Below, one piece after another: positions 601-55,602 of a stretch of 64,000 nt of DNA (its first letter is position 1; each line of letters starts with the position of its first letter). The notes under the pieces were generated by a model. It was not told the origin of the DNA, searched no databases, and was given only the letters and a program-made list of their open reading frames with translations. The position numbers and the translations under genes are program-made. Origin of the DNA: Thecamonas trahens ATCC 50062 (Eukaryota; Protista; Apusomonadida); contig NW_013657672.1 of assembly GCF_000142905.1 (NCBI RefSeq), forward strand, positions 1-64,000. The letters run 5' to 3'.

Positions 601-1434
601 CCCACTCCCCACCATCACACCCACAACCACCACACCCGCGCCACACGTACTCACTATGCCTGCAAACATAACCACCCACTTCCTGCCCGCCGATACGCAC
701 ATCAGTCGACGCCAACCCGTCAACAGCATCGCTGTCGACCGCCTGCTGCTCACCGCCGACCGCCGCCCGCCGCCGACCGACCACCGCCGGCACCACCGAG
801 AGCTAGCTAGCCATTGTCAGGACATTGGAGACGATGCATAGAGATAGCCACGGCAATGGCAATGACTACAAGTCTGCTCTCCAACCCAGTCCTCCCCTCC
901 CTCCTCCGGCCTTGCCCATCACAGTCCCCGCCGGCCTGCTCATCGCCAGCCGCCCCTGCTGCCGATCACCGAGCCAGACGACGAGACCTCCGGACTGGCC
1001 AAGACAAGGAATAACAAGAGAGGGCCAGTGCAATCGATAGGTAATGCAGTGGCCGGCTAAAGTGCAGTTGGCTGCTTCCCCCGCCATCTCAAGCCATCGT
1101 CTCCATCGACGTCCATCAATCCCATCCGTCCGCCCTCCTCGCCCTCGCCACCCAAGCCCATCCACCCTCATTGCCCACACTCCACACCCACCCATCATCC
1201 TCATCCAACTCGCCCACATCAATGCTCAAGCCCAATCGCCATACCCACCATCCCTTCGCCCTTCCCACCGCCCACGACCCCCTCATCCCCCCTACCATAC
1301 TCATTGCGCCCGATCACCCACCAACCACCACCCTCACCGCCTACTCCACCACCACCACTCTCATTTCAACCACAACTACCACCCCCATGCCATGGCCATA
1401 CCCACCACCATCCCATCACGCACTCGGCTTCCTC

Positions 1435-2040
1435 TTCCTCCTCCTTCTCCTCCTCTCCCCGCTCCAACAAACCCCCATCCTCATTTCCGACTACGACACC
1501 GCCATCCTTCAACCATCACATGCCATACTGCCCATCGTCCAACCAACAGCAGTCTTAAGCCACCCAGCCCCGATCCCGCCCCCTCAGCTGTCCCTGCCTT
1601 GCCGGGCACCAGCCGCCAACCATCGCCCGCTCGCCCGATCAGCCCACCGTCATCACTACCTAGCTCCCACCCACTACCAGCTACGCTACCCACGACCACA
1701 CTCCCGGTCATCAGACACCCCACACTAGATCCAGTACCATTATCGCTGTCATCCATACCATCTTTCTCGACTCACTTTCGCGGCGACTTGTTTGCCCTAG
1801 GTGGTTGAGCACGTCCTCTCCCGCTCCACCCCGCACACGCCCCCCACCATCCTAATTGCACGCATAGCCAATCTGATTTTAAAACTATCTCACTGCATGC
1901 ACACATTATCCATATTCATAGTATCCAACTCACAGCTCCGATATTCTGGAATTTGAGTTCTGTCACCCGAGGCCGAAGTGGTTAGCCTGGTGTCGCCTCG
2001 CTGCTGCGCAGCCCCTCCTCCCTAAGCCCGTCTCCGAGAC
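1435..2040. repeat. Diverged direct repeat, copy 2
   Basis: Same blocks in the same order as 1-600, with many substitutions and small indels. Confidence 0.85.
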
Positions 2041-2234
2041 CGGCTCAGGCCCGGCCTTGTTCAGTGCTAGACGACGCTCTTGCCAACAATACATGCCAGT
2101 TCGTCCGTGCGCTTGAACCCCACCAGAGTGGCTCGAACACGTACATCGTGGCCCTGACCTTGGGCCCCACGCCTACCATTCGCTCGCGGAGATTGTCTAC
2201 CGCCTCAGCAGTGACGGCGCCCTTTTCTTCCCTT

Positions 2235-3353
2235 CTACTTAGCCCACCCGGGCGGAATCGCCTCCCACTCGCGACGCAGCCCGGCCACGTCGAGTCCGAC
2301 ACGGTGTGCGTGAAGCGCCAGCCGCGCAGGTGCAAACATGCGCTGCGGCACATCCGCGACAAGCGCCTCACCTTGACTGCTACCTCCCGAGGACGCACAG
2401 ACGGGACAGGCGCCAACAACCGAGGCATCGGCGCTCGCGCTCGCAAAGTATCCTTGATCTTGCAGTTGAGCGACGTGTGCAACAGCGACATCAGGCGCTA
2501 CGCTCTCCTCGCGCCCGTAGAGATGATCACCCACGATAGCGCTGCCCACCTCTTGCGCGAGATGAACACGGATCTGGTGGGTCCGGCCTGTGATGGGCCT
2601 GGCTCGCACGAGGCCACGTCGGCGGTCAACAACTTCAAACTCGGTCCGTGCCTCGCGTCCGCCCTGTCCTGTCCGCCGGACGTAGTCAGCGCCGGTCGGC
2701 TCGAGGATCGGGGCATTGATGACAAACTGTTGCTCAAACGGCAGAAGGGCAGGATCTTCCACTTGTGCAAGGTACTCTTTGGACGTCACTGCTCCCGAAT
2801 GTTTCCGGAAGGAGGCATGGAGCTCCCGTGCGACGTTGACCGTCCTGGCAAGCACAATCACGCCCGACGTCGGTGCATCGAGCCGATGCACCGGATGCAG
2901 TTTGCCGAACTCCTCCTCCAGCAGCGTCGTCACCGTGCACCGAGAGTACCGGCCCGTCGGGTGAACAGGCATGCCGCGCGGCTTGTTGACCACCACCACG
3001 CCACCATCCGCGTCGATGACTTCGATCGGTGCCGGCTCTGCCGCGTCTCCGGGCAGTGCGATCGGGAGCTCGTGAACATGTCGTGAGTGGAACAGCACAT
3101 CGTGCGGTCGGACAACAAGATCACCACCAGGTGCCACAGCACAACCATCGCGCACCAGCCCCAGTCGGCCGTCCGCCACAGCTGCGGTGGCATACTCCTC
3201 CGAGTAGCTCCGGAACTCGGTCGAGATGACCTCGACGAGCTCCCGCCCAAACCACCTCCCGCGTGCATTGGCTCTCAAACATGCCACATACGGTGCCATC
3301 CATACCAGTGCATGCTCGCCCACACGCGTCACAAAGTGCGGATACCGCCACAT
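2235..3353 (-). CDS. RluA-family pseudouridine synthase (RPUSD2/Rib2-like)
   Basis: Motifs VVNKPRGMPVHP, catalytic VHRLDAPTSG, KEYLA and PITGRTHQIRVHL. N-terminus has the eukaryotic RGRWFGRELVEVISTEFR segment. Confidence 0.92.
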   Translation of the reverse strand: MWRYPHFVTRVGEHALVWMAPYVACLRANARGRWFGRELVEVISTEFRSYSEEYATAAVADGRLGLVRDGCAVAPGGDLVVRPHDVLFHSRHVHELPIALPGDAAEPAPIEVIDADGGVVVVNKPRGMPVHPTGRYSRCTVTTLLEEEFGKLHPVHRLDAPTSGVIVLARTVNVARELHASFRKHSGAVTSKEYLAQVEDPALLPFEQQFVINAPILEPTGADYVRRTGQGGREARTEFEVVDRRRGLVRARPITGRTHQIRVHLAQEVGSAIVGDHLYGREESVAPDVAVAHVAQLQDQGYFASASADASVVGACPVCASSGGSSQGEALVADVPQRMFAPARLALHAHRVGLDVAGLRREWEAIPPGWAK

Positions 3354-3542
3354 CTCCCGTCACTACCCCGCTTCTCCGCCTGTCCTCCAATCGAGAGCTG
3401 TGTGCGAGCGGGAGTGGGAGAGCAACAAACGAGGCCACAGAGCGTGCAATTGCCACACCACCACCACCACCCACCAACCGCCCTACACACCCACGCCCAC
3501 GCCCACGCCTCTCTACTCCCTCCTCTCCACCTTTGCTCCGCC

Positions 3543-4341
3543 ATGGACGAAGATACACTCCACCTTGTGGCGTGTGCCCTTTCGGGCCTTGCCTCCTTTT
3601 CCTTCATCCTCACCTACATTGTACGCACATGCCATGTCCCCCCCCCCCCCTTCCCCCCCCGTTCCGCCTTCCATTCCTCACTGCCACACTCATTCGCATC
3701 CTTGCTGCTGGACGCAGATCCTGACGGTGCAAGCGAGCAACACCGCAACAAACAATGCGAACAATGGCAACAGCTCGTCGTCTGATGATAATGAAGGTGT
3801 CTCGGCAGCTGCTAGGGTGGTCTTTCTCGTCCTCGGCATCGTCCTCGGCTCGCTCTCGTGCGCCATCTACAAGCGCTATCGCAACACCTTTGCCTCCACC
3901 AGGCGGAGCCGTCGCAATACTCTGCTCAATCCGGGTGCGCAACCGACGTATGCTGCCGGTCCGCGTGCGCCGCCGGCGTTCAACACCCCAGCGCCGCACG
4001 TCCAGAACCCGGCGCCGTACGTCGTGCCGTACAACCCGCCACGGGTGTCTGGCACGCCACCACCGCCGCAGTCCAACTACGCCCCGCCGCCGCCGTCTTC
4101 GTTGGGCTACGGCCCTCCACCGACAGCCTCACGCGGCGCTGTTCCTCCAGTGTACGGGGGGTCGGTGCCGCCATCGTTTGGTGGCGCAGGTGGCTACCAG
4201 CCACCGCCAGTCACCCACGCCCCGCCGCAGCACCCGCAGACCAAGCCACCGCCGATGCCCTCTGCCCCGCCGCCGGCGCCTGCAGTTCCACCCGCGCCTG
4301 CGCCCGACATGCCGCCGCCGCTCTATTCCACTACCGAGTGA
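3543..4341 (+). CDS. Small membrane protein with a proline-rich tail carrying PPxY motifs (exons 3543-3620, 3718-4341)
   Basis: ATG at 3543; phase-0 intron gtacgc...gacgcag (3621-3717) joins the frames. Two hydrophobic segments, a KRYR stop-transfer, then a Pro-rich tail with PPVY and PPLY. Confidence 0.7.
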
Positions 4342-4383
4342 GTCCTTTACAAGCCGTACAACCTCTGCGATGTATTGGCATCG

Positions 4384-5223
4384 CTACTCGAGACAGTACA
4401 CCTTGGCGCAGATGTCCGTCCGCGACACAAGACGGACAATGTCACGACTCCGCGCCTGCGGAGAGATCCAGTAACAGTTGTTTCCAACCACCACACTACC
4501 GGACGAGAGAAGACGGTCGACGACCGCGGCGTTCCCGTTGAACACCGCGCCGCGGAGTGCCACGTTGTTGCTCGCCCCGGCATCTACGCCCGGGTGGCCC
4601 AGCAAGGCCGTCACCACGTCGGCGTGCCCGGCCTCGGCCGCGAGCCGGAGCGCACAGTTGGAGTCCACGCCCGGATCGACCTCGTTGCGCCCGAGCAGGA
4701 GCGCCACCACGCCCACGTGGCCCTCGCGGCTGGCCCCGATTATGGCTGCGTTGCCATCGGCTGCAGCATCTACATCACCGCGCGACAGCAAGTATCGCAC
4801 TCCGTCTTCCGCCCCGTGCCGAGCAAGAACCGCTACCAGCGGCTGCGGCCTCCCGCGGTCCACCCGGATCGCCCGTCGGAGCACCTCGGGCTGCCGCGCC
4901 ACCACCGCGCCAAGGAGCTGCGACCACAGCGGATGCCGCGGGAACCGGACCATGACGTTCACCATCTCCAGCGCGTCTGCTACTTCCAGCCGCTTTCGCT
5001 TCGAGAGGGCAAGAAGTGCCGCGCCCCATGCTGCTCGCTGTGTACACCATATCGCGCCGCGGAGCGCAAGCACTTTGCGCCTCATGAACGCGCTGCCGAG
5101 GAGGACCGCGTGGAAGCCTTTGGACGTCAGCGCCAGCGCAACCACGTCGCATGCCTGTAGCACACCCACTTCACAAGCTATTCTGCACACAATCTCGGCA
5201 GGAAGCCGTGAGAGCGACGCCAT
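4384..5223 (-). CDS. Ankyrin-repeat protein with an N-terminal F-box-like motif
   Basis: LSRLPAEIVCRIA F-box-like start, then ankyrin repeats (AIIGASREGHVGVVALLL, ALRLAAEAGHADVVTALL, ALRGAVFNGNAAVVDRLL). First ATG of the ORF is used; the ORF is open to 5367. Confidence 0.8.
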   Translation of the reverse strand: MASLSRLPAEIVCRIACEVGVLQACDVVALALTSKGFHAVLLGSAFMRRKVLALRGAIWCTQRAAWGAALLALSKRKRLEVADALEMVNVMVRFPRHPLWSQLLGAVVARQPEVLRRAIRVDRGRPQPLVAVLARHGAEDGVRYLLSRGDVDAAADGNAAIIGASREGHVGVVALLLGRNEVDPGVDSNCALRLAAEAGHADVVTALLGHPGVDAGASNNVALRGAVFNGNAAVVDRLLSSGSVVVGNNCYWISPQARSRDIVRLVSRTDICAKVYCLE

Positions 5224-5399
5224 CCCTGTCTGTCCTTGTAGGGCGCGACGAGTGGCTTGCCATATTGGCAGCAAGTACTGTTGGCGCACGCGCTTTGACT
5301 CGGCGCCGACAAAAATTGACCATATGTCGCAGTGCGGCAATACGCCGGGACAATAACGCTCCACCACACCCCGGACAAGCTATGTGTTTGTCTCTTGTC

Positions 5400-6383
5400 T
5401 TATGACTCCCAGAACTGGTAGTTAACGCCCACAATCGGCACAAGGAGTGTGAGAATGATGCGGAGAATATAGACCGTGACGTACACTCGCGAGTCGGTGA
5501 TCCAGTACGAGCACGAGCCCGGCAGCCGACCAAAGATGCCGATCGAGTACAGGTCCCAGAAGAAGGCCAGAACTGCCGAGGCTGTGTAGAGCGCGATGAG
5601 TGACCGCAACTTTCGCCGCTTGGCACGCAGCCGCCTTGCCACTCCACCATCAGCATTGATGGTCGAGGTGCCCGGCGTGAGTGGCGTTGTCTCTGCCAAG
5701 TCGCGCCGCTTAGCCCGCTGCTCCATCCGCGCCAGCCGGCGCGACACCACCGTGGCCAGGCCAAAGAAAACTCCACACGAGACCAGGCCGGCCGTCGACA
5801 TCAGCGTCCACGACAGCGACCGACAGTCCGCCGAGTGGTTCAGCACCGACGAGAGCGCAATGATCAAGACTACGATTTCGCCGAGGCCGAGGACCACAAA
5901 GCACCGCGAGATGAGCACCACCGTCGTCGACGAGACAAAGACCCTCCGCGAGAAGATGAGAAAGACGTATGTGACGCCAAACGGAATGACAATGTTGATA
6001 AAGACCACAACCTTGTCGAGCACTACGTTCGAATCTCTGCCAACCACCGTAGCAAAGCGGATCACAAGCAGCAGTGACTGGAAGGCCGCCAGCCCGAGGA
6101 GCCCGAGCTGATGCGCAACGGCTCCGAGCCCTTTCTTCGCCACATGCTTCCGTACTTTCCACACCATGTTACACATGCAAAGAAGCAAGCATGCAGCAGA
6201 CAACGTCAGGCACAGGCTCACCCGTGTGCACTCGGACGACCCGTTCTTGCCTGCCTGGTGCGTGCACGACGGCGACGGGCCAAACACCGCAAACGTCCGC
6301 GAATGCTGCCCTCCAGAGTGTGGCCGCGTCGCGTTCCCTACGCCCTCCACCACATGCGGAAGGCCAAAGCCATCTCCCCACAT
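5400..6383 (-). CDS. Putative seven-transmembrane (GPCR-like) protein
   Basis: Seven hydrophobic stretches, a long basic loop between TM5 and TM6, and Cys in the predicted outer loops. Start codon uncertain. Confidence 0.65.
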   Translation of the reverse strand: MWGDGFGLPHVVEGVGNATRPHSGGQHSRTFAVFGPSPSCTHQAGKNGSSECTRVSLCLTLSAACLLLCMCNMVWKVRKHVAKKGLGAVAHQLGLLGLAAFQSLLLVIRFATVVGRDSNVVLDKVVVFINIVIPFGVTYVFLIFSRRVFVSSTTVVLISRCFVVLGLGEIVVLIIALSSVLNHSADCRSLSWTLMSTAGLVSCGVFFGLATVVSRRLARMEQRAKRRDLAETTPLTPGTSTINADGGVARRLRAKRRKLRSLIALYTASAVLAFFWDLYSIGIFGRLPGSCSYWITDSRVYVTVYILRIILTLLVPIVGVNYQFWES

Positions 6384-6517
6384 GTTCCTTGCTCTTCGCC
6401 TGTTGCCTCAACTCCGAGAGTGGGGTGATGTCGTGGCCAGGCCGCCGGTTGGTGGGCGCCGCTCCTCACGCAGCCGGACGCAGCAAATTGTCGGCGTCGC
6501 CTTTACAGTGCCGCCAA

Positions 6518-8013
6518 CTACAGCATCTCATCCCAAGTAAACGCCAGCTCCTGCCGGTGCTCGCTGCACTGCATGATCTGGCCCACACCGCAGTTACCAA
6601 ACATCCACCACACGTGGTGCATCGAGGCAACCTGGAACACAGTGTTGCTCATGGCAGAGCCGCACACGCCGCACAATACCGGCTCGGCGCCCGGTGGCCG
6701 AAGCGGAAACCCGCCAAGCTTGTCGCACGGCGAGACCGTCTTGATCAGCATCTCACTTGGCTCGATCCTTGCCTCGTCCGCTGCGTCAGCCGCGCGGATC
6801 GCCTCGAGATATCCCGCCGGCAGCGGCGGCAGCCCGCGCTCCTTGGGATGCCGTTTGCGCAGGATCGCATTGCGCGAGAGTAGTGGAAGATGCGGCATTG
6901 TGAGCTTCTTCTCGGCCTGCGTGAGCCCGGCTGCGGCCACAAACACGTCGTAGTACGGAACGCGTGCTCCGATCGGTCCGCCCGAGTGCCACCACTCGCC
7001 GATGTCCTCGGCAAAGCCCTCCCAGTCCAGAATTTCGATGCGGGTAAAGTCCGATTCGCCCCGCCCCCGTCTTCCTCGCCGCGTGCATACTCGTCCGCAG
7101 TCACCCAAGCCATCCGTGCCTCGGCGGCACCAGACTGGGGGTGGGAGCAATCACATCCGCCCGTCGAGCAGATGAACAGCTGAACGAGCGGCACATTTCC
7201 GCCGCCGCCAGCATCACGCCGCGGCTCAAACCGGTTACGCGCACCTGCAGGCATTTCTGGCACAGCGAGCTGGACAACTAGCACCATGCTCCCACCACAC
7301 ATTCGGCAGAGCGGCTGTGGGCCCCATCCGCGCCCGCCAAAGTGAGACCACCGCGCGGGCACGTTTTCGGCCACCACCGCAGCATATGCAATCCGGCGCA
7401 CCGTCCCACCAGCACCCATCACCACCTCATTAAGCGCATACACGTTCTTCCAGTCGAGTCCTGCTTCGCCACACCGCGCGATGACCGCGTCGACGTTGCC
7501 CGCGCCAAACGCCGCTCGTGCCCGCCGGTACCACAGATACGGATCGCGCTCCACCTCGCACAGCCGCCGGCAGACAAGCCGAAGCGCGGCGAGATCGCAC
7601 GGCCCAAGCCGCTGCATGACGTTGATCAAAACCTCGTTGGGGAGCTCCAGGAGCAGTGAGCTCGTCTCCTCGTCGCCGTCTCCTGCCGGCCGTAGCAGCC
7701 GCGCGGCCGGGCGCGATGTCGTCCCGTTGCTCCGCACCGCTGCTAATCGCGACTCGGTCCGCTTACATCGCTCGATCTCTTCCGGCGTGAGCCGCACGCC
7801 CAGCTCGTCGACCCACACACAACTCTGCCACCATCGCCGCTGCGTCTCGTACCACCGAGCCCGCATGTCGTCGCCAAGCCCGCCGCCCGGGGCGGGCACC
7901 TGATGTAGCTTCCGCCGACGCCCCGGCCACGCCCACGCCGTCATCACCGCAAGCGTCACTCCTGTTCCAACTGCAAGCCATTCGACAGAGACTGTGCTCT
8001 GGATGAGCTCCAT
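6518..8013 (-). CDS. F-box protein with an N-terminal anchor and a C-terminal DUF1963/YwqG-like domain; frameshift near 7060
   Basis: F-box LLELPNEVLINVMQRL..CDLAALRLVCRR. Then SHFGG..PLCRMCGGSMVLVVQL..LVQLFIC, and after a frameshift in a G-run, DKLGGFP..CGVCGSAM..VFQVAS..MFGNCGVGQIMQCSEH..LAFTW. Confidence 0.75.
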
Positions 8014-36217: not shown

Positions 36218-38137
36218 ATGGTGCTGGTGCTGGCCTGCATGATGGTGCAGGCGCTGTGGGTTGACACGGTAGGCGCGGCAACAGTGACAGTGACGACAAC
36301 GGCCGAGCTGACCAACGCCATCAACAACGCTGCTGCGGGTGACGTCATTCAGCTGCAGGGCGGGACGACATTTGCGTACTCGGGCATGACGCGGATCACT
36401 TGCGATGCAGATGGCACGGCCGCAAACCCGATCACGGTCCAGGGCCTGTCGGGCTCCAAGCTGACGTGGAGCCACACGTCGAACTACATCGAGGGCTTTG
36501 TGGTCGAGGGCAAGCACTGGCACTTTCGCGATCTGGACATCCAGGGCCTCTGCACCTCGGCCAACCATCGGTACTGCGAGCATGCCTTCCACGTGGTCAA
36601 AGACGCCGACTTTTTTGTCCTCCGCGACTCCAAGGTCGTCGACTTTAACGCGCAGGTCAAGCTCAACGGCGCCGGGCCCAACACCAACACGTTCCCGGAC
36701 GACGCCCTCTTCCTCAACAACGAGATCTATGACACGGCGGGGCGCGCCACTTCGAACCCGGTGACCAAGTTCAACATTGATGGTGGCTACCGCCACGTGG
36801 TCCGTGGCAATCTCATCTACGACGGCCAGAAGCTCCAAGGCAACACCGTATCGTACCAGACGTTCATCAAGTCGAATGCTCAGTTTGGTGTGTACGAGGA
36901 CAACCTCATCATCTGCTCTCGATTCCACACCGGCGGCGTCCGCATCGGCATGTCGTTTGGCGGCGGCGGGACCTCGCCCGACTCGATCTGCATGGATCTT
37001 ACGTGTAACCCCGAGTCGCGCGATGGCATCATGCGCAACAACATCGTCGCCAACTGCAACGACGTTGGCATCTACCTCAATGAGGCTCGCGACACCAAGA
37101 TCTACAACAATCTCTTGTTTGCCACCAACGGCATCGACGTCCGCTTCGCCACCTCGACCGCCGACATCCGCAACAACATCGTCGCCGGCGGCTCCATCCG
37201 CAACCGCAACGGCGGCACCTCAACAACCTCGGCCAACTGGATCACCACGCCCGCCAACGCGCAGACCGCCTTTACAGACCCGGACAACTACGATTTTACT
37301 CTCTCGACCGACACATCGCTCCGCTCTAGCTTTATCGACGCCGGCGAGGTCGTGGCCGAGGTGACCACCGACTACTGCGGCCGCACATGGACAGCTCCCC
37401 GCGACATTGGCGCGCTCGACTACTCGCGCGGCCCATGTGATACCACCGACCCCCGCAACGTTGTCGTGCCGCCCTCGCCACCGCCATCACCGCCGCCGCC
37501 CTCGCCCTCGCCGTCGTCATCGCCCTCGCCGCCGTCGTCGCCCTCGCCGCCATCATCACCCTCGCCGCCATCGTCACCCTCGCCGCCGTCGTCACCGCCG
37601 CCGCCACCGCAGGGCGGCGCCACCGCTGGCGCTGTCGACCAGGCTACTGCGCCCAACTCGGATTCGGGCACAGGCTCGACCGTCGCCGTTGTCGGCGCCA
37701 GCATCGGAGTTGTCATCCTCTGCCTTGTTGCCGTCGTTGTAGTCCTAGTCGTCCGCTCCCGGCGGCAAGGCTCGTCATCTGCCGAGTACAAGGCCGACGA
37801 CGGCATGTCTTTCGAGCTTGCGTCGGCCGAGCCCTACACGCACAGCGCCTCGCTGCCGCCCACGCCTGCTGCGCGGCCGATGGCCGCAAAGCCCAAGCCG
37901 CTGCCCAAGTCCGGAGCTGATCCGCTGGCGCCCAAGCCGGCTCCCAAGCCGCTCCCGCCCAAGCCGTCCCAGACTCGCCGGATGAAGTTTGAGTTTACCG
38001 CCGGCGCCGACGACGAGCTCGCCCTTGCGGCCGGTGCAGAGGTCCAGATCATCGAGGAGTTTGATGACGGCTGGGCCGCCGCCTGCTCGGTCGCCACCGG
38101 CGAGCGTGGCATCATCCCTGTGGCCTACCTCGAGTGA
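36218..38137 (+). CDS. Type I membrane protein: right-handed beta-helix ectodomain, Ser/Pro stalk, TM segment, SH3
   Basis: Signal MVLVLACMMVQALWVDTVGA; TAELTNAINNAAAGDVIQL cap; Asn-ladder repeats (RNNIVANC, IYNNLL); DIGALDY; (PSSPSP)n; TM VVGASIGVVILCLVAVVVVLVV; SH3 FEFTAGADDELAL..DDGW..GIIPVAYL. Confidence 0.9.
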   Translation: MVLVLACMMVQALWVDTVGAATVTVTTTAELTNAINNAAAGDVIQLQGGTTFAYSGMTRITCDADGTAANPITVQGLSGSKLTWSHTSNYIEGFVVEGKHWHFRDLDIQGLCTSANHRYCEHAFHVVKDADFFVLRDSKVVDFNAQVKLNGAGPNTNTFPDDALFLNNEIYDTAGRATSNPVTKFNIDGGYRHVVRGNLIYDGQKLQGNTVSYQTFIKSNAQFGVYEDNLIICSRFHTGGVRIGMSFGGGGTSPDSICMDLTCNPESRDGIMRNNIVANCNDVGIYLNEARDTKIYNNLLFATNGIDVRFATSTADIRNNIVAGGSIRNRNGGTSTTSANWITTPANAQTAFTDPDNYDFTLSTDTSLRSSFIDAGEVVAEVTTDYCGRTWTAPRDIGALDYSRGPCDTTDPRNVVVPPSPPPSPPPPSPSPSSSPSPPSSPSPPSSPSPPSSPSPPSSPPPPPQGGATAGAVDQATAPNSDSGTGSTVAVVGASIGVVILCLVAVVVVLVVRSRRQGSSSAEYKADDGMSFELASAEPYTHSASLPPTPAARPMAAKPKPLPKSGADPLAPKPAPKPLPPKPSQTRRMKFEFTAGADDELALAAGAEVQIIEEFDDGWAAACSVATGERGIIPVAYLE

Positions 38138-45068: not shown

Positions 45069-45641
45069 TCACGGCCGCGGCGACGCCGGTGCTGCCGCCA
45101 CAATCGACGCCCGCCTTCCCAGTCGCGCTGTCACCACCGTGTTCGACACAGCAGGACTCAGCGGCGCCGACATCGTCCGCCCAGCGCCACTCTCCCGCCT
45201 CACGTCAACCACACTGCCGACTCCAAGCCCATGCCTGTCCCGCCCGGCCGATCCCTTGCCATTGCCCTTCTTTGCCTTTCCCTTGCCCTTCTTTGCCTTT
45301 CCCTTGCCCTTCTTTGCCTTGTTCTTGCCCTTCTTTGCCTTGCCCTTGCCCTTCTCCTTCGCCTGCTGTGCGCCCACTCCCATCCTCAGCAGCACTTCGG
45401 GCGTCGAATCCCTCCGCAGCCGCCCACTCGCCCCCACCGCCGCCAACGACGTCACTAGCCCTGATCCCGAGGTAGCCGACCGGCTCCGAAGCGCCCCAGA
45501 GCTGCTCCCCGCACCCCCAGACCCTGCGCCGCCACCCGGGCTCGCCGGTGGTGTGGCACCAGAGCCAGAGACCACCGACCCGCGCCGCCCGAGTTTGCTT
45601 GCCACCGTCAGCTCCACCATTTTGCTTCTACTCCCAGACAT
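45069..45641 (-). CDS. Hypothetical small basic low-complexity protein with KGKGKAK repeats
   Basis: ~190-aa ORF ending 8 bp from the CoaE stop, with in-frame 21-bp Lys/Gly repeats. No family recognised. Confidence 0.45.
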   Translation of the reverse strand: MSGSRSKMVELTVASKLGRRGSVVSGSGATPPASPGGGAGSGGAGSSSGALRSRSATSGSGLVTSLAAVGASGRLRRDSTPEVLLRMGVGAQQAKEKGKGKAKKGKNKAKKGKGKAKKGKGKAKKGNGKGSAGRDRHGLGVGSVVDVRRESGAGRTMSAPLSPAVSNTVVTARLGRRASIVAAAPASPRP

Positions 45642-49100: not shown

Positions 49101-52100
49101 AGTGCCTTGGTCTGAAGCGCTTGGCATCTGGCTTGCCCCACTGCCGATCTCGGTCCCGACGCCATCGACCTGCCGGACATGGACGTTGTCGCTGCCGCCT
49201 TTGATCTTGCTTCTGCCGCTGTCGCCGTCGCGCCCAACTCGCAAGATGCGCTTGACTTTGCCAACGCTCTCCCACGCTGGTTGGTCCCGCTTTGGGCCTC
49301 GCCAGTCCACCAGGTCTCCGACGGGCTGGCGGCCTCCGAGTTGGCACCGGCTCAGCTGGCGGCGCTCCTTGCCGCTCGCGCAGTCTACTACTCGCTCAAG
49401 GCGCTTACTCTCCTCCTCGCCTCTCCGTCACACACTGAACGCTGGTCGCCGTCGACCTGGGAACAGCTAGCGTGCGGTGCCTTTGACACGTTTGTTGCGC
49501 CGGCGCTCCCGCACGCCACCCGAACCGCGCCTGCCATCCACCTGCACGGCCTGGTAGCGCGAACAGGGCTTTCCACCTTTGCCGCCATCCTCGCCGCCGC
49601 TCCGGGCAACCTTGGTCGTTCGCGCCACGCCGATGCGGGTACCCTCCTCTTTGCATGGGCTCGTCAGCTCCTTGCACCGGGTGCTCCAGCCTCCATCACG
49701 ACCGTCGGTCTCAATGCCCCTGCCGCCTACTCAAAGCGACCGCTCCTCGCCGACCGCCTCGCAGTCATCGAGGCGCTTGCCCGTCGCGCCGCAGCCTGGG
49801 ACGGCCCGCACCTGGCTGCCGGTCTCGACGACAAGACGCTGAGCCTTGTCGTCGCCTGCCTCGGCGGCCTCATGCACGACCAGGTGTCAGCCGTTCGCGC
49901 CACCGCGTGGCGGACCGTCGCCTGGATGGTGGCGGACACCAGTCGCGCCGCACCAGCGTTTGCCGCGGCCCATCCGCGCCTGCTCGTCGAGGCACTTGAG
50001 CTCGCCGCCGATCATCGCTCCCCGTACGGCGTTCGGGCCTCTGCATATGCCGCTGCCGCCGCCTTGCTCCTCGCCGCGCCTGACCAGGTCCCGTCTCGGG
50101 TCTGGGCCCCGGCGTTGGAGGCGCTTGCCGAGCTGCTTGCCGAGCCTACCGCCCCGCCGGCCTTTGTCCACGGTGCTGCCCGCATGATGGCGGCGCTGGT
50201 GTCGGTCGCCTCGCCCGATGACGCTGCCCACATCTCGGCCGTTGCGCTCCAGACCCGGCTCTGGTCACGTGTTTTGGACCTGGCGTCGGCTGCCTCGTTT
50301 GTGAGCCGATCGCAGGCGCTCCTGTCCGCGCTCGGCCTTGCCGGCGACGACTGTGCGGCGGCCGGTCCAGGCGCGGCGTGGAAGCACTTGCAGGCTGCTT
50401 CGAGCCCGCACGCTGCCTCGCTCGCTCTCTTTTGCACTGCACTGCATGGGCTCGCTGCCTCGGCGCGTGAGACCCGGTCATACTTGGTCGCAACGCTCCC
50501 GCTTGTTCCGACGCTGATTAGCTTGCTAGCCTCCCCGGGTCACCTGCATCTCGCGGGCAAGTCGGCCGAGTATGGTCCGTCGCTTGCAGCTTATGTTGGC
50601 GCCCATCCGGACGCTTTCACTCGCGGCCTTGCCGGGCTCGCTTCGGCGCAGCTGGTCGGTGCCTGTGGCCGGCTGTTGGCGTTTGCCTGGCAGGAGCTCC
50701 GGCCACCGGCGCGTGCAACCATCTGCGGTCGTGACGGGCGTGTGCTGGCCTTGGCCCTGGCGCTCGCAGCCGGGCCGGCGAGTGCCTCGCTAGACGCCCG
50801 GGTCGGCATCGCGCTGGCTGTCGCTGCGTGCCTCGGCTGCGACCAGCCTGGCTCTGCACTCTTGCGGCCCGTCCTGGACGAGATGGTGAGCCCGAGTGAG
50901 GTTGACGGGTTCTGGCTGCCTCACCAGCTCGAAGCCTCGGTCATTCCGGGCGCGCTCCTCGGCTCGCAATTGCTCGCGCTCTACCGTGAGCTGCACACCT
51001 CGGATGTTGTCTTTGCGTGGTCGGTCCCGCACTCGCTTCACGGACTGGCAGCGTTGGAGGCGGCGCGGGCGCACACAGCGTGCGCGCTGGCGGCGCTCTG
51101 GCTCGGCTCCGACTCGAGCGTCGAGCTGGCGGCGCTCGCCGGCGAGTTTATCTCGCTCCGCCGCGAGGCGTCAGAAGCCATGTCGCTGGTGACCAAGCTC
51201 GACTCGGAAACCGCACGCGCAGGCTCAGAGCTCGCTTCGCGGCCGGGCTTGACCTCGATGACCCGCAGCCTGGCGGTGGCACAGGTTCTCAACACGCTCG
51301 CACTGCTCAAGGCCGGTGTCCTTCGGGTGGCTGACGCCAAGGCGCAGGCCATCGAGGCAGGAGTCATCACGTTTGTCCACCGCGCGCTGGCGCGGATCAC
51401 CTCGACCAAGTGGCCGACGGCGTGCGAGCATCGCACTACCCTTGTCCGGGCGTGCCTCGGCCTAGTTGCCAATCTCGCTGCCGACTCGCCGGCTTCACTG
51501 CGGGCGATCGCCGAGCACAGCGAGCTGCTCCGCGCGCTGACGGCGCGAGTCGAGTCGCCGCCGCGCGACGGGACGTATCCAGACGTGCTCGCGCTGCTCG
51601 GAGAGCTTGCCCGCGGCTCCGAGGTCCGCGCCCAGTTGCTCAAGACCAAGATCGACCACAGTCTTGCCGCAGTGGTCCTCCGTGGCGCCGATGGGGTCGA
51701 GCGGACCGAGAAGGTCGTCGACCGCGAGCTCGCTCCAGTCCTCAACTTTTGGATCTCGTTCACATCATGCGCCGGTGGTGCCGAGCGTGCCACCAAGGTC
51801 CGTGGCCTCTTTGGCGGCCTCCACCGCATCGCGCTCAGCGTGCCTCACTCGGAGGTCGGCCTAGCGGCGCTCAAGGTCGTCCGCAACATGGCACACTGCC
51901 GCGAGGCCAAGGTCCACTTTCTGGAGGCCGGGCGGCTGGCCGGGCTCACTCGCAAGCTCCTGGTGCTCCCGATGCAACCAACGCCCGAGGCCGATGCTGA
52001 GGCGGCCACACGGTGGGCGCTGGTCACCGACGCGCTCTGGGCGCTCGTCTACGCCTCGCAAAAAATCAAGGTCGCCCTCAACAAGATCGGCGTGGCCAAG

Positions 52101-52334
52101 ACGCTCGAGCTCATTGAGGCGTATATGTGGCGGCGGTACGGGCCGTCGCTGGAGGAGGCCTCGCCCGAGCTGGCTGCCGAGAAGCGGCAGCGCATGACCG
52201 GCGTGGCGTGGTATGCCTCGATCGACGCCACCGCCGCCGAGCCGGTCGACGCTGCCGGGCTGGCGACGCTCGCCAAGGCTCTTGAGGCCTCGACCGTTGT
52301 CCGTGGCCTGCTCCACCAGCGCGTGATAAACTAG
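46126..52334 (+). CDS. RTTN: Rotatin (centriole/basal-body protein); frameshift near 49140
   Basis: N-terminus LLDKLSSELPSVRSAALDSLVFKLHHGL..LLSWFNF..GAVPFL matches the rotatin N-terminal pattern; C-terminus ALWALVYASQKIKVAL; ~2070 aa ARM-like. Confidence 0.85.
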
Positions 52335-52383: not shown

Positions 52384-55300
52384 CTAGTCGAGGACAATGA
52401 CCGGAGCGTCGGCGCGCGGCACAGCGCGCGGGCGTGGAGTAAAGAGCGATGACGCCGGCGCAAACGACGGCGCGTACGACGGTTCAGTCGGCGCGTACGA
52501 CGGTTCAGTCGGCGCGTACGACGGTTCAGTCGGCGCGTACGACGGTTCAGTCGGCGCGTACGACGGTTCAGTCGGCGCGTACGACGGTTCAGTCGGCGCG
52601 TACGACGGTTCAGTCGGCGCGTACGACGGTTCAGTCGGCGCGTACGACGACGAGTTCGGCACGCACGGCTCGGGTGACGGCGAGCCAAAGAGGCCAGAGA
52701 GTGGATGTGTTCGCTTGGGCGGCGGCGCTACGACCGGGGCCGGGTCGTCGTCGAGGGTAAGGTCGACGGCTTCAAAGACGCGCTTGCGCTTGCGGGAGGC
52801 GCCAGTGGGGGTGGAGAGGGCCGACGCCGGAGTCGGAGTAGTGTCCGCCGGGGCGAGCGCGCTTGGGTTGCCCGTCGCGGCATGGGCGCCGGGCAGGTGC
52901 GGGGTTGACGACGCGTCTGTGGGCGCGGGGGAGGGGCCCGCGAGCTCGGCGGCCGCCGGAGCCGCAGACGGATTCGGCGCCGTGTACTCGATCTCGGGCG
53001 CGTGTGCGCCTTCGATAGAGCCGTCGGGGAGGATGACGACGCCCTCACAGTCCTCGTCGGCAAACTGCGGCGAGGTGACGAGCGAGAGAACAAAGAGGTC
53101 GACGACGACGTCCGAGGTGGAGAGCGGCTTCTTGCAGATGGGGCAGGGCGTGGATGAGCGGCCCTGGTGGGCCATGACCTGGAGGAGCGTGACGAGGTCG
53201 AAGAGCGACGAGACGTGGGTGCACTGCTTGCCGCATGCAGGGAGGCGCATGCGGGCAAAGGCGAGCGGACAGAGGAACGAGAGCTTGACCGAGAGGACCG
53301 GCAGCTCGGGAAGCTCAAAGTTGTTGCGAAGAAAGGTGGCCTTGGCGGCAGCGACCTGGGCGCCCGAGACCTCGATGGTGGTGTCGCACACGGCGAGCGA
53401 CCGGGTGGGTCCGGCGAGCTGCGATGCGTCCCCCGCAGCCTTCAGTTGCTTGCGGAGGAGCGTGGTGCCGACAGCCTCGGGCTTGATGCGCGGTGCGTAC
53501 GCAAAGGCGAGGATGATGATGTCGGGCAGGTACGACGACGAGCGGACGATGGAGATCTTGTTGCGACCCTCGATGAGGTGCTTGCCCAATTCGGGTGCCG
53601 GATGTGCGGCCGACGGCGTGATCGGCTTCTGGTTGACGTACACTGTAACTGCTGGCACTGCGTTTGGCGACCGCCGTGACTCGATGAGCAGCTTACACGA
53701 GATGTCAGGCGAGGAAAAGTTCCACAGCGGGAGCGAGGTCACGTTGAGCTCAAAGGCAAAGGTCCGTGTCCCAACAGGGAGCATGGCCTGGTACGGCGGG
53801 AGTACGTACCGCTCATGACGGTAGTCGAGGAACGGGTCGGATCCACGCCCGCGGAACTTGTATGATCTCAGCTCGTCGACTGTCAGCGTCTTCTGGCTGG
53901 CCGCTGGCTTGGGCCGCCTGCTGAGCGCCGACGCGACCGCCAAGGACATCCGCGCCCGCGCGTCAGCCGACGCGACCGCGCTGTTTGAGCTGGTGGTGTG
54001 TCTCGCTGCAGCACTAGGGCTCGATCTTGAAGGTGCTGGTGGTTGTCTCTGCCCCGGAGCCTGGGCCGGCTGTGTTGAAACGCCAAACGCGGAATCCGCC
54101 AGGGAGCACAGCGTTTCGCCGCGCTTGGTACGATGGTGGGTATGGCTCACGCCGTGGAGGAGTGCGGCCATTGCACTTGGCAGAACCGGAGCGTGCGAGG
54201 CGGACTTGAGCATGTCGTCCGCGCGGAACCAGTAGATCTCGACGTCACCCAAACGGTCGGAAGAGCTGACGATAGCTGAGAGCTTTGCCTCGTCAGACAA
54301 CGGCGGAATGAGGAGCCAAGGCGAGCGCATCATGCAGTACCGGTCTTGCGACCGAATGAACGACGCTGTGATCTCGGGCAGCGCGCCCCAGAGGCCAGGC
54401 AAGCCGTCGCTCACCATCGGATCGACCCGCCCAGACGGCAGGCCGAGTGGAAGCTTGAGCTCCAAGAGGGGCGGCCGGAGATCCGCGAGGTATGTAAGCC
54501 ACCTGGCGAACGCCACCAGCATCTTATCGGTCACGCCCGGCACCCCGCCGACAAAGATCGCCAGCAGTGACGCCTCGGCCGAACACCGCAGCGCGTGAGT
54601 CTTGAGCTGGGACACGCCTGGTGCTGCGTAGATGACATGGCGAAGCTTGGCCGCCGACAAGGATCGAATGACACACAGCTGTTGTCGAGATGCGTAGAAG
54701 ATCGGTTGGAAAGCCAGCGAGATCAGGACCAGAACCGGGACCGGGACCGGGGGCGGGACCGGGAGCAGGACCACAGGGGAGCAGGACCAGGAAGGGCAGC
54801 ACGACCAAGAGCAGGGCAAAGTGTAGGAGCAAGAGCAGGACAAAGAGCAACGACCACGATCACGACCAGAAACACAACCAAGAAGGCGACCACAGCACCC
54901 GACCATGACCATGACCATGACCATGACCGTGACCATGACCATGACCATGACCATGACCATGATCGTCACCATCACCGTCCCCAATGACCATCGAGCACGA
55001 CAACGGCACACAAGTAGAGGAACGACCAATTCAAAGGTGACCACCACACACACCGCCAATGACGACATGCCCACCCATAGCCATACACATTCAGATACCC
55101 ACAGCCAATGGATGAGTCAATGTCCATACCATGCACATTCCCATATATATGTCATGGGGGTAGGAAGGGGGGGGGGGGGGGAGGGGGCACACCGCCCGTC
55201 CCTCAGCAGGTCACCTTGGGGAGACCGCACCCGCACACACAGACAGACACGCACACTTGGAACCCCCATCCGTGGAATACTCAGAGAGCCTCAACCTTGA

Positions 55301-55602
55301 GGAGGGAATATGTACAGCGGAGTATGTTCTATAACATATCCGGAGAAGGTGTCGGTGGGTGGAGGAATGCGGGTGGTAGGGGTGCAGGACGATGTGGTTG
55401 GGGAGAGTGGGTGGGAGGGTGGCGGGGTCGGAGGGGAGGGCACACAGCAAAGGCAATGATCCCGGTATGGATGGCGATGAAGTCACGGGTCATAGTATCG
55501 GATGGAATCGATGTGAGGCATGGAAGAACATACCTGTTGATCAAGAGCTTTGATATTGGCGGCAAAGTGGGAGAGACTTGGTGTGGTTGATGTCATGGTC
55601 AT
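52384..55602 (-). CDS. SP-RING/MIZ zinc-finger protein (PIAS/Siz-like SUMO E3) with CTD-like heptads (probable exons 55602-55534, 54678-52384)
   Basis: LSFLCPLAFARMRLPACGKQCTH..FD..CPICKK..VVVDLFV, VVILPDGS, NLS RKRKR, SIM-like AVDLTLDDD and VIVLD. Exon 1 is inferred from a cag|gtatgt donor and an in-frame acacag-type acceptor. Confidence 0.8.
52477..52644 (-). repeat. Eight perfect 21-bp coding repeats encoding YAPTEPS
   Basis: Unit TACGCGCCGACTGAACCGTCG on the minus strand, 8 identical copies. Confidence 0.97.
54900..54962. repeat. (GACCAT)n hexamer repeat, probably intronic
   Basis: About 10 copies. Confidence 0.9.

Follow-up and report, generated by a model that had tools for sequence, protein, structure and literature searches.

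The window analysed here comprises the first 64,000 nucleotides of contig NW_013657672.1 of the apusomonad Thecamonas trahens ATCC 50062. Its gene AMSG_01993, read from the minus strand, ends in a run of perfect 21-bp repeats encoding the heptad YAPTEPS eight times, and it is this array and the protein carrying it that are considered in the following. An annotation made beforehand from the letters alone (the first-pass annotation) had described the product as an SP-RING SUMO-ligase-like protein whose tail mimics the RNA polymerase II (Pol II) C-terminal domain (CTD), with its heptad YSPTSPS. The coordinates of the features are collected in Table 1.

Tandem Repeats Finder delimited the array with a period of 21 bp and 8.7 copies at 100% matches without indels. 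Its score of 364 is the highest among all arrays of the window whose period is a multiple of 3, and the 21-bp array is unique in the 28.7-Mb T. trahens genome. The minus-strand frame 52384-55074 encodes YAPTEPS eight times (52477-52644), each unit being spelled by the codons TAC GCG CCG ACT GAA CCG TCG, and then continues with YAPSFAP..., VIVLD and the stop codon. The eight nucleotide-identical heptads described in the first-pass annotation were thus recovered, and reading in a single frame gave the same layout that it had proposed, namely an SP-RING, a patch resembling a nuclear localization signal (NLS), a sequence resembling a SUMO-interacting motif (SIM), the heptads and a terminal VIVLD. 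Two protein models of the gene exist at NCBI (787 and 808 aa), and both retain the repeat in the YAPTEPS frame, with the SP-RING and the SIM upstream in that same frame. Other open reading frames (ORFs) across the array, on the plus strand or in another frame and translating as GAYDGSV or RRTRRLN repeats, were rejected as by-products of the GC-rich sequence, homology being found only in the minus-strand YAPTEPS frame. In the 808-aa model, which begins at 55068, a 10-copy (GACCAT)n microsatellite in the 5' region of AMSG_01993 (54901-54962) is translated as a Met-Val run. The N-terminus of this model looks mis-modelled, and the 787-aa model with its separate exon 1 is more plausible.

Table 1. 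Features of AMSG_01993 and of the RRM protein with a related array. Positions are those of the window unless another contig is named.
Feature	Position	Strand	Basis
Gene AMSG_01993, T. trahens ATCC 50062, contig 8	52384..55602	(-)	exact database proteins XP_013761027.1, XP_013761026.1
Exon 1	55534-55602	(-)	placement of N-terminal peptide of 787-aa model (P0001)
GT-AG intron (ends GTATGT...CAACAG)	54679-55533	(-)	inferred from annotated protein
Exon 2	52384-54678	(-)	787-aa model
PINIT-like / ZMIZ GBD-like beta-sandwich	53479..53805	(-)	BLASTP to ZMIZ-type relative, AlphaFold, Foldseek
SP-RING (zf-MIZ) zinc finger	53125..53280	(-)	PF02891
Basic patch RKRKR (NLS-like, putative)	52780..52794	(-)	direct sequence reading
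SIM VDLTLDDD (PIAS-type, acidic run; putative)	52744..52767	(-)	sequence pattern
Coding minisatellite, 21 bp, 8.7 identical copies	52468..52649	(-)	Tandem Repeats Finder, sequence reading
SIM-like end VIVLD (pattern only), stop 52384-52386	52387..52401	(-)	sequence reading
RRM protein, 467 aa	contig 24, 277381-277866; locus L025, ORF 1222-2625	(-)	one RRM, PF00076, E 4e-15

The product of AMSG_01993 is, as predicted from its sequence, a divergent SP-RING SUMO E3 ligase of the ZMIZ/PIAS family. By hmmscan its SP-RING matched PF02891 at E 1.2e-7 with 31.9 bits, slightly short of the 33.5 cut-off, which was exceeded with 36.8 bits when the genome was searched. A 315-residue query around the SP-RING retrieved 451 relatives in an exhaustive phmmer search of 1.84 billion representatives, and the zinc ligands C243, H245, C269 and C272 (C-x-H ... 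C-x-x-C) were invariant in an alignment of 27 sequences that included AMSG_01993. The six scanned relatives that also match over the upstream domain were all of the ZMIZ1/2 type, with PF25527 plus zf-MIZ, and in a BLASTP comparison with the ZMIZ-type protein P0012 the beta-domain and the SP-RING aligned together over 263 aa (E 9e-19). In the AlphaFold model, with a mean pLDDT of 71, the SP-RING reached 85-94 and the strands of the beta-domain 64-92. The ten best Foldseek matches were all Siz1, Siz2, PIAS2 or PIAS3 (E 3e-13 to 1e-10, ~285 columns). The beta-domain stretch had no direct Pfam match, neither to PINIT nor to PF25527, and the N-terminal stretch of 266 aa had none at E<=10 (no SAP, no Zmiz1_N TPR); by eye, a possible SAP-like stretch was seen near the N-terminus. 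The SP-RING SUMO-ligase-like protein of the first-pass annotation is therefore borne out by PF02891, the relatives, the zinc ligands and the fold, ZMIZ/PIAS being the more precise label.

With ZMIZ1 and ZMIZ2 (hZimp10 and hZimp7; tonalli in Drosophila), which are PIAS-like transcriptional co-activators, AMSG_01993 shares the beta-domain plus SP-RING over those 263 residues as well as a Pro-rich tail with short repeats after the SP-RING. It differs from them in having no scoring PF25527 and no Zmiz1_N TPR, in an identity of only ~26%, and in a tail with a PIAS-type SIM and perfect heptads instead of HTP-type runs. The PIAS/Siz E3 ligases (PIAS2, PIAS3, Siz1 and Siz2; PDB 4fo9, 4mvt, 3i2d, 5jne and 6u75) were the only fold matches at E<=1e-10, and they have in common with AMSG_01993 the conserved zinc ligands, a module of KRK and a V-[IV]-D-L-T-L-D-acidic SIM after the SP-RING, and a variable, Ser/Thr-rich C-terminus. 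Unlike them, AMSG_01993 lacks a Pfam match to PINIT or SAP, its SUMO E3 activity is predicted, and Ser stands in place of the Cys that usually follows the His in C-x-H-x-x-C. This Cys is likewise missing, again with Ser in its place, from the product of the only other MIZ gene of the T. trahens genome (contig 11, 458249-458392, minus strand; ORF 1713-3941 (-) of locus L037). This paralogue scored 67.8 bits with zf-MIZ and weakly with PF25527 (ZMIZ-like), and it carries a poly-Asp run and a SIM-like C-terminal LIVLSSDDDDD.

Downstream of the SP-RING, the basic patch RKRKR is followed by VDLTLDDD. One of two SIM patterns was found in 19 of 149 relatives, and 13 of those 19 have [VI]DL[TS][VILM][DES][DES] downstream of the SP-RING, e.g. 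KRK..VIDLTLDSDDDEPP; in the relatives, KRK or KRP stands directly ahead of the SIM. These counts support the view that RKRKR and VDLTLDDD form a conserved, though still putative, family module, and the NLS-like patch and SIM pointed out earlier can be taken as such. A SIM-like hydrophobic core lies within the last 12 residues of 52 of the 149 relatives. The array is placed between VDLTLDDD and VIVLD and comprises 56 residues, among them 8 Tyr, 8 Glu and 16 Pro, with a net charge of -8; disorder-promoting residues make up 66% of the 216-residue tail as a whole. Pro-rich C-terminal tails with short repeats of their own, e.g. HTP runs, also occur in the ZMIZ relatives, and the Pro-rich C-terminal tail of hZimp7/10 has been reported to possess intrinsic transcriptional (transactivation) activity (PMC1935018).

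Contigs from public sequencing runs were inspected for the array. Both of its flanks and the unit were recovered in four runs, the flanks without any difference in runs X3 and X4. In run X3, repeat-only contigs had depths of 21 and 17.6 versus 2.2-3.0 on the flanks (~7-8x), and in run X4 the repeat contig had a depth of 10.3 versus ~2.4-2.9 (~4x); an array of 8.7 copies should give a ratio of ~7x at k=31. X3 and X4 are small runs of T. trahens itself and weak as independent support, since they are possibly the data behind the assembly. Two metatranscriptomes, one from the subsurface and one from marine plankton, contained near-identical pieces of AMSG_01993. One contig of 141 bp extends from past the stop codon as far as the first units with no differences from the reference, and the other contigs of the same run showed few, namely two synonymous changes and one Thr-to-Ala change. 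No joints indicative of introns were seen over the array in the run contigs, with DNA carry-over in RNA libraries being possible. AMSG_01993 is a real gene and is probably expressed. Contigs of the subsurface metatranscriptome (run X1) over 53245-53866 were ~99% identical to AMSG_01993, suggesting the presence of a close T. trahens strain in that subsurface habitat. On the other side of the stop codon lies a convergent gene (49179-52334, plus strand; 1051 aa, no Pfam family), whose own stop is 49 bp from that of AMSG_01993; the 3' untranslated regions of the two genes must therefore overlap or be very short.

Several features of the DNA bear on the age of the array. In three sampled T. trahens genes, ACT and GAA account for 6.8% and 7.5% of their codon families, respectively. 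Since all units are identical and share these two rare codons, they point to a single founder that was copied recently, and the recent expansion or homogenisation that the first-pass annotation had deduced from the DNA identity holds. A 12-bp direct repeat, TCG TAC GCG CCG, borders the array and is a natural substrate for slippage. The array has the features of coding minisatellites in low-complexity tails: perfect head-to-tail units, a period that keeps the frame, a short direct-repeat flank and a region tolerant of length changes. Coding tandem arrays with periods of 6, 18 and 21 are common in the window; the others have fewer copies and lower identity than the YAPTEPS array, whose unit happens to resemble a functional heptad. 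Two other arrays with a period divisible by 3 (37470-37608 and 45254-45355; 18 bp x 6-7 and 21 bp x 4.9; 76-91% identity) translate as PS-rich/GD-rich and KG-rich repeats, and such arrays are frequent in the T. trahens genome.

A homologue search with the 712-aa protein as query recovered only the protein itself. The phmmer search of the 1.84 billion representatives with the beta-domain plus SP-RING gave no close relative, nor did a scan of the JGI metagenomes, and neither a Y.P..P. tandem nor a strong heptad periodicity was present in any of the 149 best relatives. Orthologues from related protists had been proposed as a check on the repeat. Distant relatives carry other repeats or none, which speaks against a CTD decoy, and no close orthologue was found in the representatives or the JGI metagenomes. 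An origin of the unit by copying from RPB1 was rejected, because the best 21-mer of the CTD differs at 5 of 21 bases, as expected from shared amino acids and GC-biased codons. The best 21-mer of the gene for the RRM protein listed in Table 1 showed 8 differences from the unit.

The heptad matches YSPTSPS at 5 of 7 positions, the exceptions being Ala2 and Glu5, exactly as had been counted in the first pass. Like the Pol II CTD (PF05001), the array has a period of seven, tandem units and a disordered C-terminal location, and it keeps Tyr1, Pro3, Thr4, Pro6 and Ser7. Unlike the CTD, it has lost both Ser-Pro sites through Ser2->Ala and Ser5->Glu, and it does not lie on RPB1. For a random heptad of the composition of the tail, the probability of matching YSPTSPS at 5 or more of 7 positions in some register is ~1.6e-3. 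A rough extrapolation from two period-21 arrays in 64 kb to 28.7 Mb, with a very rough base rate taken from this single window, gives hundreds of arrays and of the order of 0.1-1 chance match per genome. Counting the arrays and windows scanned, the 5/7 match is not beyond chance. The placement of both mismatches at Ser2 and Ser5 is striking, but this is a post hoc observation.

When PF05001 was used, the RPB1 tail of T. trahens matched with E 2.2e-36 in 14 stretches, and the tail of AMSG_01993 gave no match at E<=10. Genome-wide, 15 places in RPB1 and one weak place on contig 42 were found, the array locus not being listed. YAPTSPS-type arrays in other proteins still match PF05001 weakly, so that the greater distance of the array from this profile is due in part to its Glu. 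Proline-directed CTD kinases, Pin1/Ess1 and Ssu72 act on Ser/Thr-Pro sites. Not a single [ST]P dipeptide occurs in the 56-residue array, which therefore offers these enzymes nothing to act on.

The CTD of the organism's own RPB1 (contig 52; locus L004, ORF 1819-7284 (-)) consists of ~13 double units of 16 residues, in which YSPTSPA alternates with YGASPTSPS, carrying a Gly-Ala insert after Tyr1. Because of these double units it has no strict heptad run, and it was absent from the genome scan for tandem Y.P..P.Y.P. When the genome was searched with the tail, the RPB1 CTD was found at E 4e-4 with 62% identity over 52 aa, and matches of equal strength were obtained with other low-complexity stretches, including one in a spurious frame. 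The first-pass annotation had read the array as a genetically fixed 'Ser5-P, no Ser2-P' decoy. This reading, attractive as it is, is not supported: the PF05001 miss, the lack of Ser/Thr-Pro sites, the 16-residue period of the own CTD and the absence of the repeat from the relatives searched all speak against it. On balance the evidence is more unfavourable than favourable to it, without amounting to a refutation.

We consider that the array is probably a coding minisatellite of young age, which makes the Pro-rich tail between two SIM-like motifs longer and more acidic, its CTD likeness being a by-product of composition. One 21-bp founder unit would have been amplified by replication slippage or unequal exchange; the 12-bp direct repeat is still present at the array border, and the remnant downstream of the array is S-Y-A-P-S-F-A-P. 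A period of 21 would have preserved both the frame and the terminal SIM-like end. In this way the 56 residues and the charge of -8 would have been added to a presumably flexible stretch between the SIM-like motifs, extending and acidifying a Pro-rich tail similar in kind to the one with transactivation function in ZMIZ1/2. The resemblance to the CTD would then follow from a Tyr/Pro/Ser/Thr composition rather than from the evolution of a decoy.

A number of observations weigh against this interpretation. Strict tandem Y-x-P-x-x-P heptads are rare, and only AMSG_01993 and one RRM protein rise above background in the genome, so that this class of heptads is not a common product of slippage. The RRM protein is also the one other gene found with tandem Y-A-P-x-x-P-x-Y-A-P, a reversed-pattern control giving 0 matches. 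Its tail of ~200 residues is built from [YF]-[AT]-P-[ST]-S-P-x units in degenerate form (YAPSSPT, YAPTSPS, FTPSSPT, also FTPATEPS) with varied codons, and because of this degeneracy and codon variation its array is older and probably maintained. Heptad arrays of the type YAP[TSN]SP[SVEG] were likewise found in the non-RPB1 database proteins P0152, P0153, P0154 and P0156, of eukaryotic or metagenomic origin, one of which has an RRM_3 domain and two of which match PF05001 weakly (E ~0.3); taken together, this hints that YAP[TS]SP arrays outside RPB1 are a functional class. In the ESM Atlas, the RRM protein had only generic RRM clusters below 0.9. In a literature search, YAPTEPS was not found, YAPTSPS appeared only in engineered S2A CTD mutants, and no description of natural YAP-type arrays was found. 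A second strain or haplotype seen in the metatranscriptome data, ~0.7% divergent, shares the array edge with the reference and carries at least 2.4 identical units. Finally, the spacing E-x-x-Y-x-P that arises across each junction of the array (E5-P6-S7-Y1-A2-P3) equals that of the Nrd1-interacting motif (NIM) of yeast Trf4, an established acidic mimic of the CTD.

This spacing is the basis for considering a functional CTD mimic, in which eight NIM-like junctions (E5-P6-S7-Y1-A2-P3-T4) bind proteins with a CTD-interacting domain (CID) and other Ser5-P readers by avidity. The CID of yeast Nrd1 binds the Trf4 NIM, D-D-D-E576-D-G-Y579-N-P581-Y-T-L, where Glu576 is the proposed mimic of Ser5-P and the CTD pocket takes up Tyr579 and Pro581 (PMC4186968), and Sen1 contains a similar mimic (PMC7110113). 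Like these motifs, the array has an acidic residue three positions before Y-x-P and lies in a disordered C-terminal region; four CID genes are present in T. trahens (contigs 40, 49, 7 and 18), its own CTD is among the matches of the tail, and an older YAPSSP-type array exists in a second gene. However, NIMs occur as single copies, contain five or six acidic residues, have an additional Tyr in the turn and are conserved among yeasts, whereas the array has eight units with one Glu each, between Thr and Pro, and no known orthologue. The affinity of the Trf4 NIM comes from its five-residue acidic run, and mutation of Glu576 alone affected binding only partially (PMC4186968). To this are added the failure to match PF05001, the missing Ser/Thr-Pro sites, the different period of the own CTD, tail matches of equal strength in spurious frames, and identical units without conservation, which give no sign of selection. 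Binding of CTD readers by the array thus appears improbable to us, and we are just as doubtful of its presumed consequence, that such a mimic would anchor the SUMO E3 at early-transcribing Pol II or compete for readers with the polymerase. Readings of the unit as a WW-binding PPxY, an SH3-binding PxxP with a basic residue or a pYxxP motif were also considered by eye and do not fit.

Acidic and aromatic residues define activation domains. The array might accordingly be a selected, multivalent module for activation or condensate formation, with its Tyr exposed by Glu and Pro, which would reinforce a ZMIZ-like C-terminal transactivation region or promote partitioning into nuclear bodies, or else a spacer between SIMs for the binding of poly-SUMO. 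The eight Tyr, eight Glu and 16 Pro, the negative charge, the disorder-promoting tail and the position between VDLTLDDD and VIVLD all agree with this, as do the short repeats and the transcriptional activity of the Pro-rich ZMIZ C-terminus (PMC1935018). Nevertheless, identical units, rare codons and the lack of orthologues provide no evidence of selection, and such properties are the default for any young expansion in a tail of this kind; we therefore regard selection for such a role as unlikely, if less far-fetched than mimicry of the CTD. It is very improbable, on the other hand, that the YAPTEPS peptide does not exist at all because of an assembly error, removal by splicing or use of another frame. 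Short-read contigs do break at the array, which leaves its exact copy number dependent on the reference assembly, the depth ratio in X4 is only ~4, and long spurious ORFs cover it on the opposite strand as well as in a different frame. Against an artefact speak the flanks and unit found in four runs, the 7-8x repeat depth in X3, the absence of joints, and a period divisible by 3 in a frame that runs from the SP-RING and the SIM to the stop codon, is included in both NCBI models and is the only one with homology.

If the array is an ordinary minisatellite, it shows that one slippage event can yield a regular heptad array resembling a famous signalling platform, and it is a warning against inferring function from young low-complexity repeats. 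If the mimic were true, the array would be without precedent both as a tandem, genetically encoded phospho-CTD mimic and as a direct link between a SUMO E3 and CTD readers, in a lineage sister to the opisthokonts, and the specificity of CTD readers would be testable with a natural S2A/S5E sequence. We give little credence to the wider idea that the array, the YAPSSP-type tail of the RRM protein and the YAP[TS]SP arrays outside RPB1 form one class of 'Ser2-less' CTD-like arrays that includes a multivalent NIM-type mimic. The older YAP[ST]SP arrays of the T. trahens RRM protein and of other non-RPB1 proteins may nonetheless be the more durable lead.

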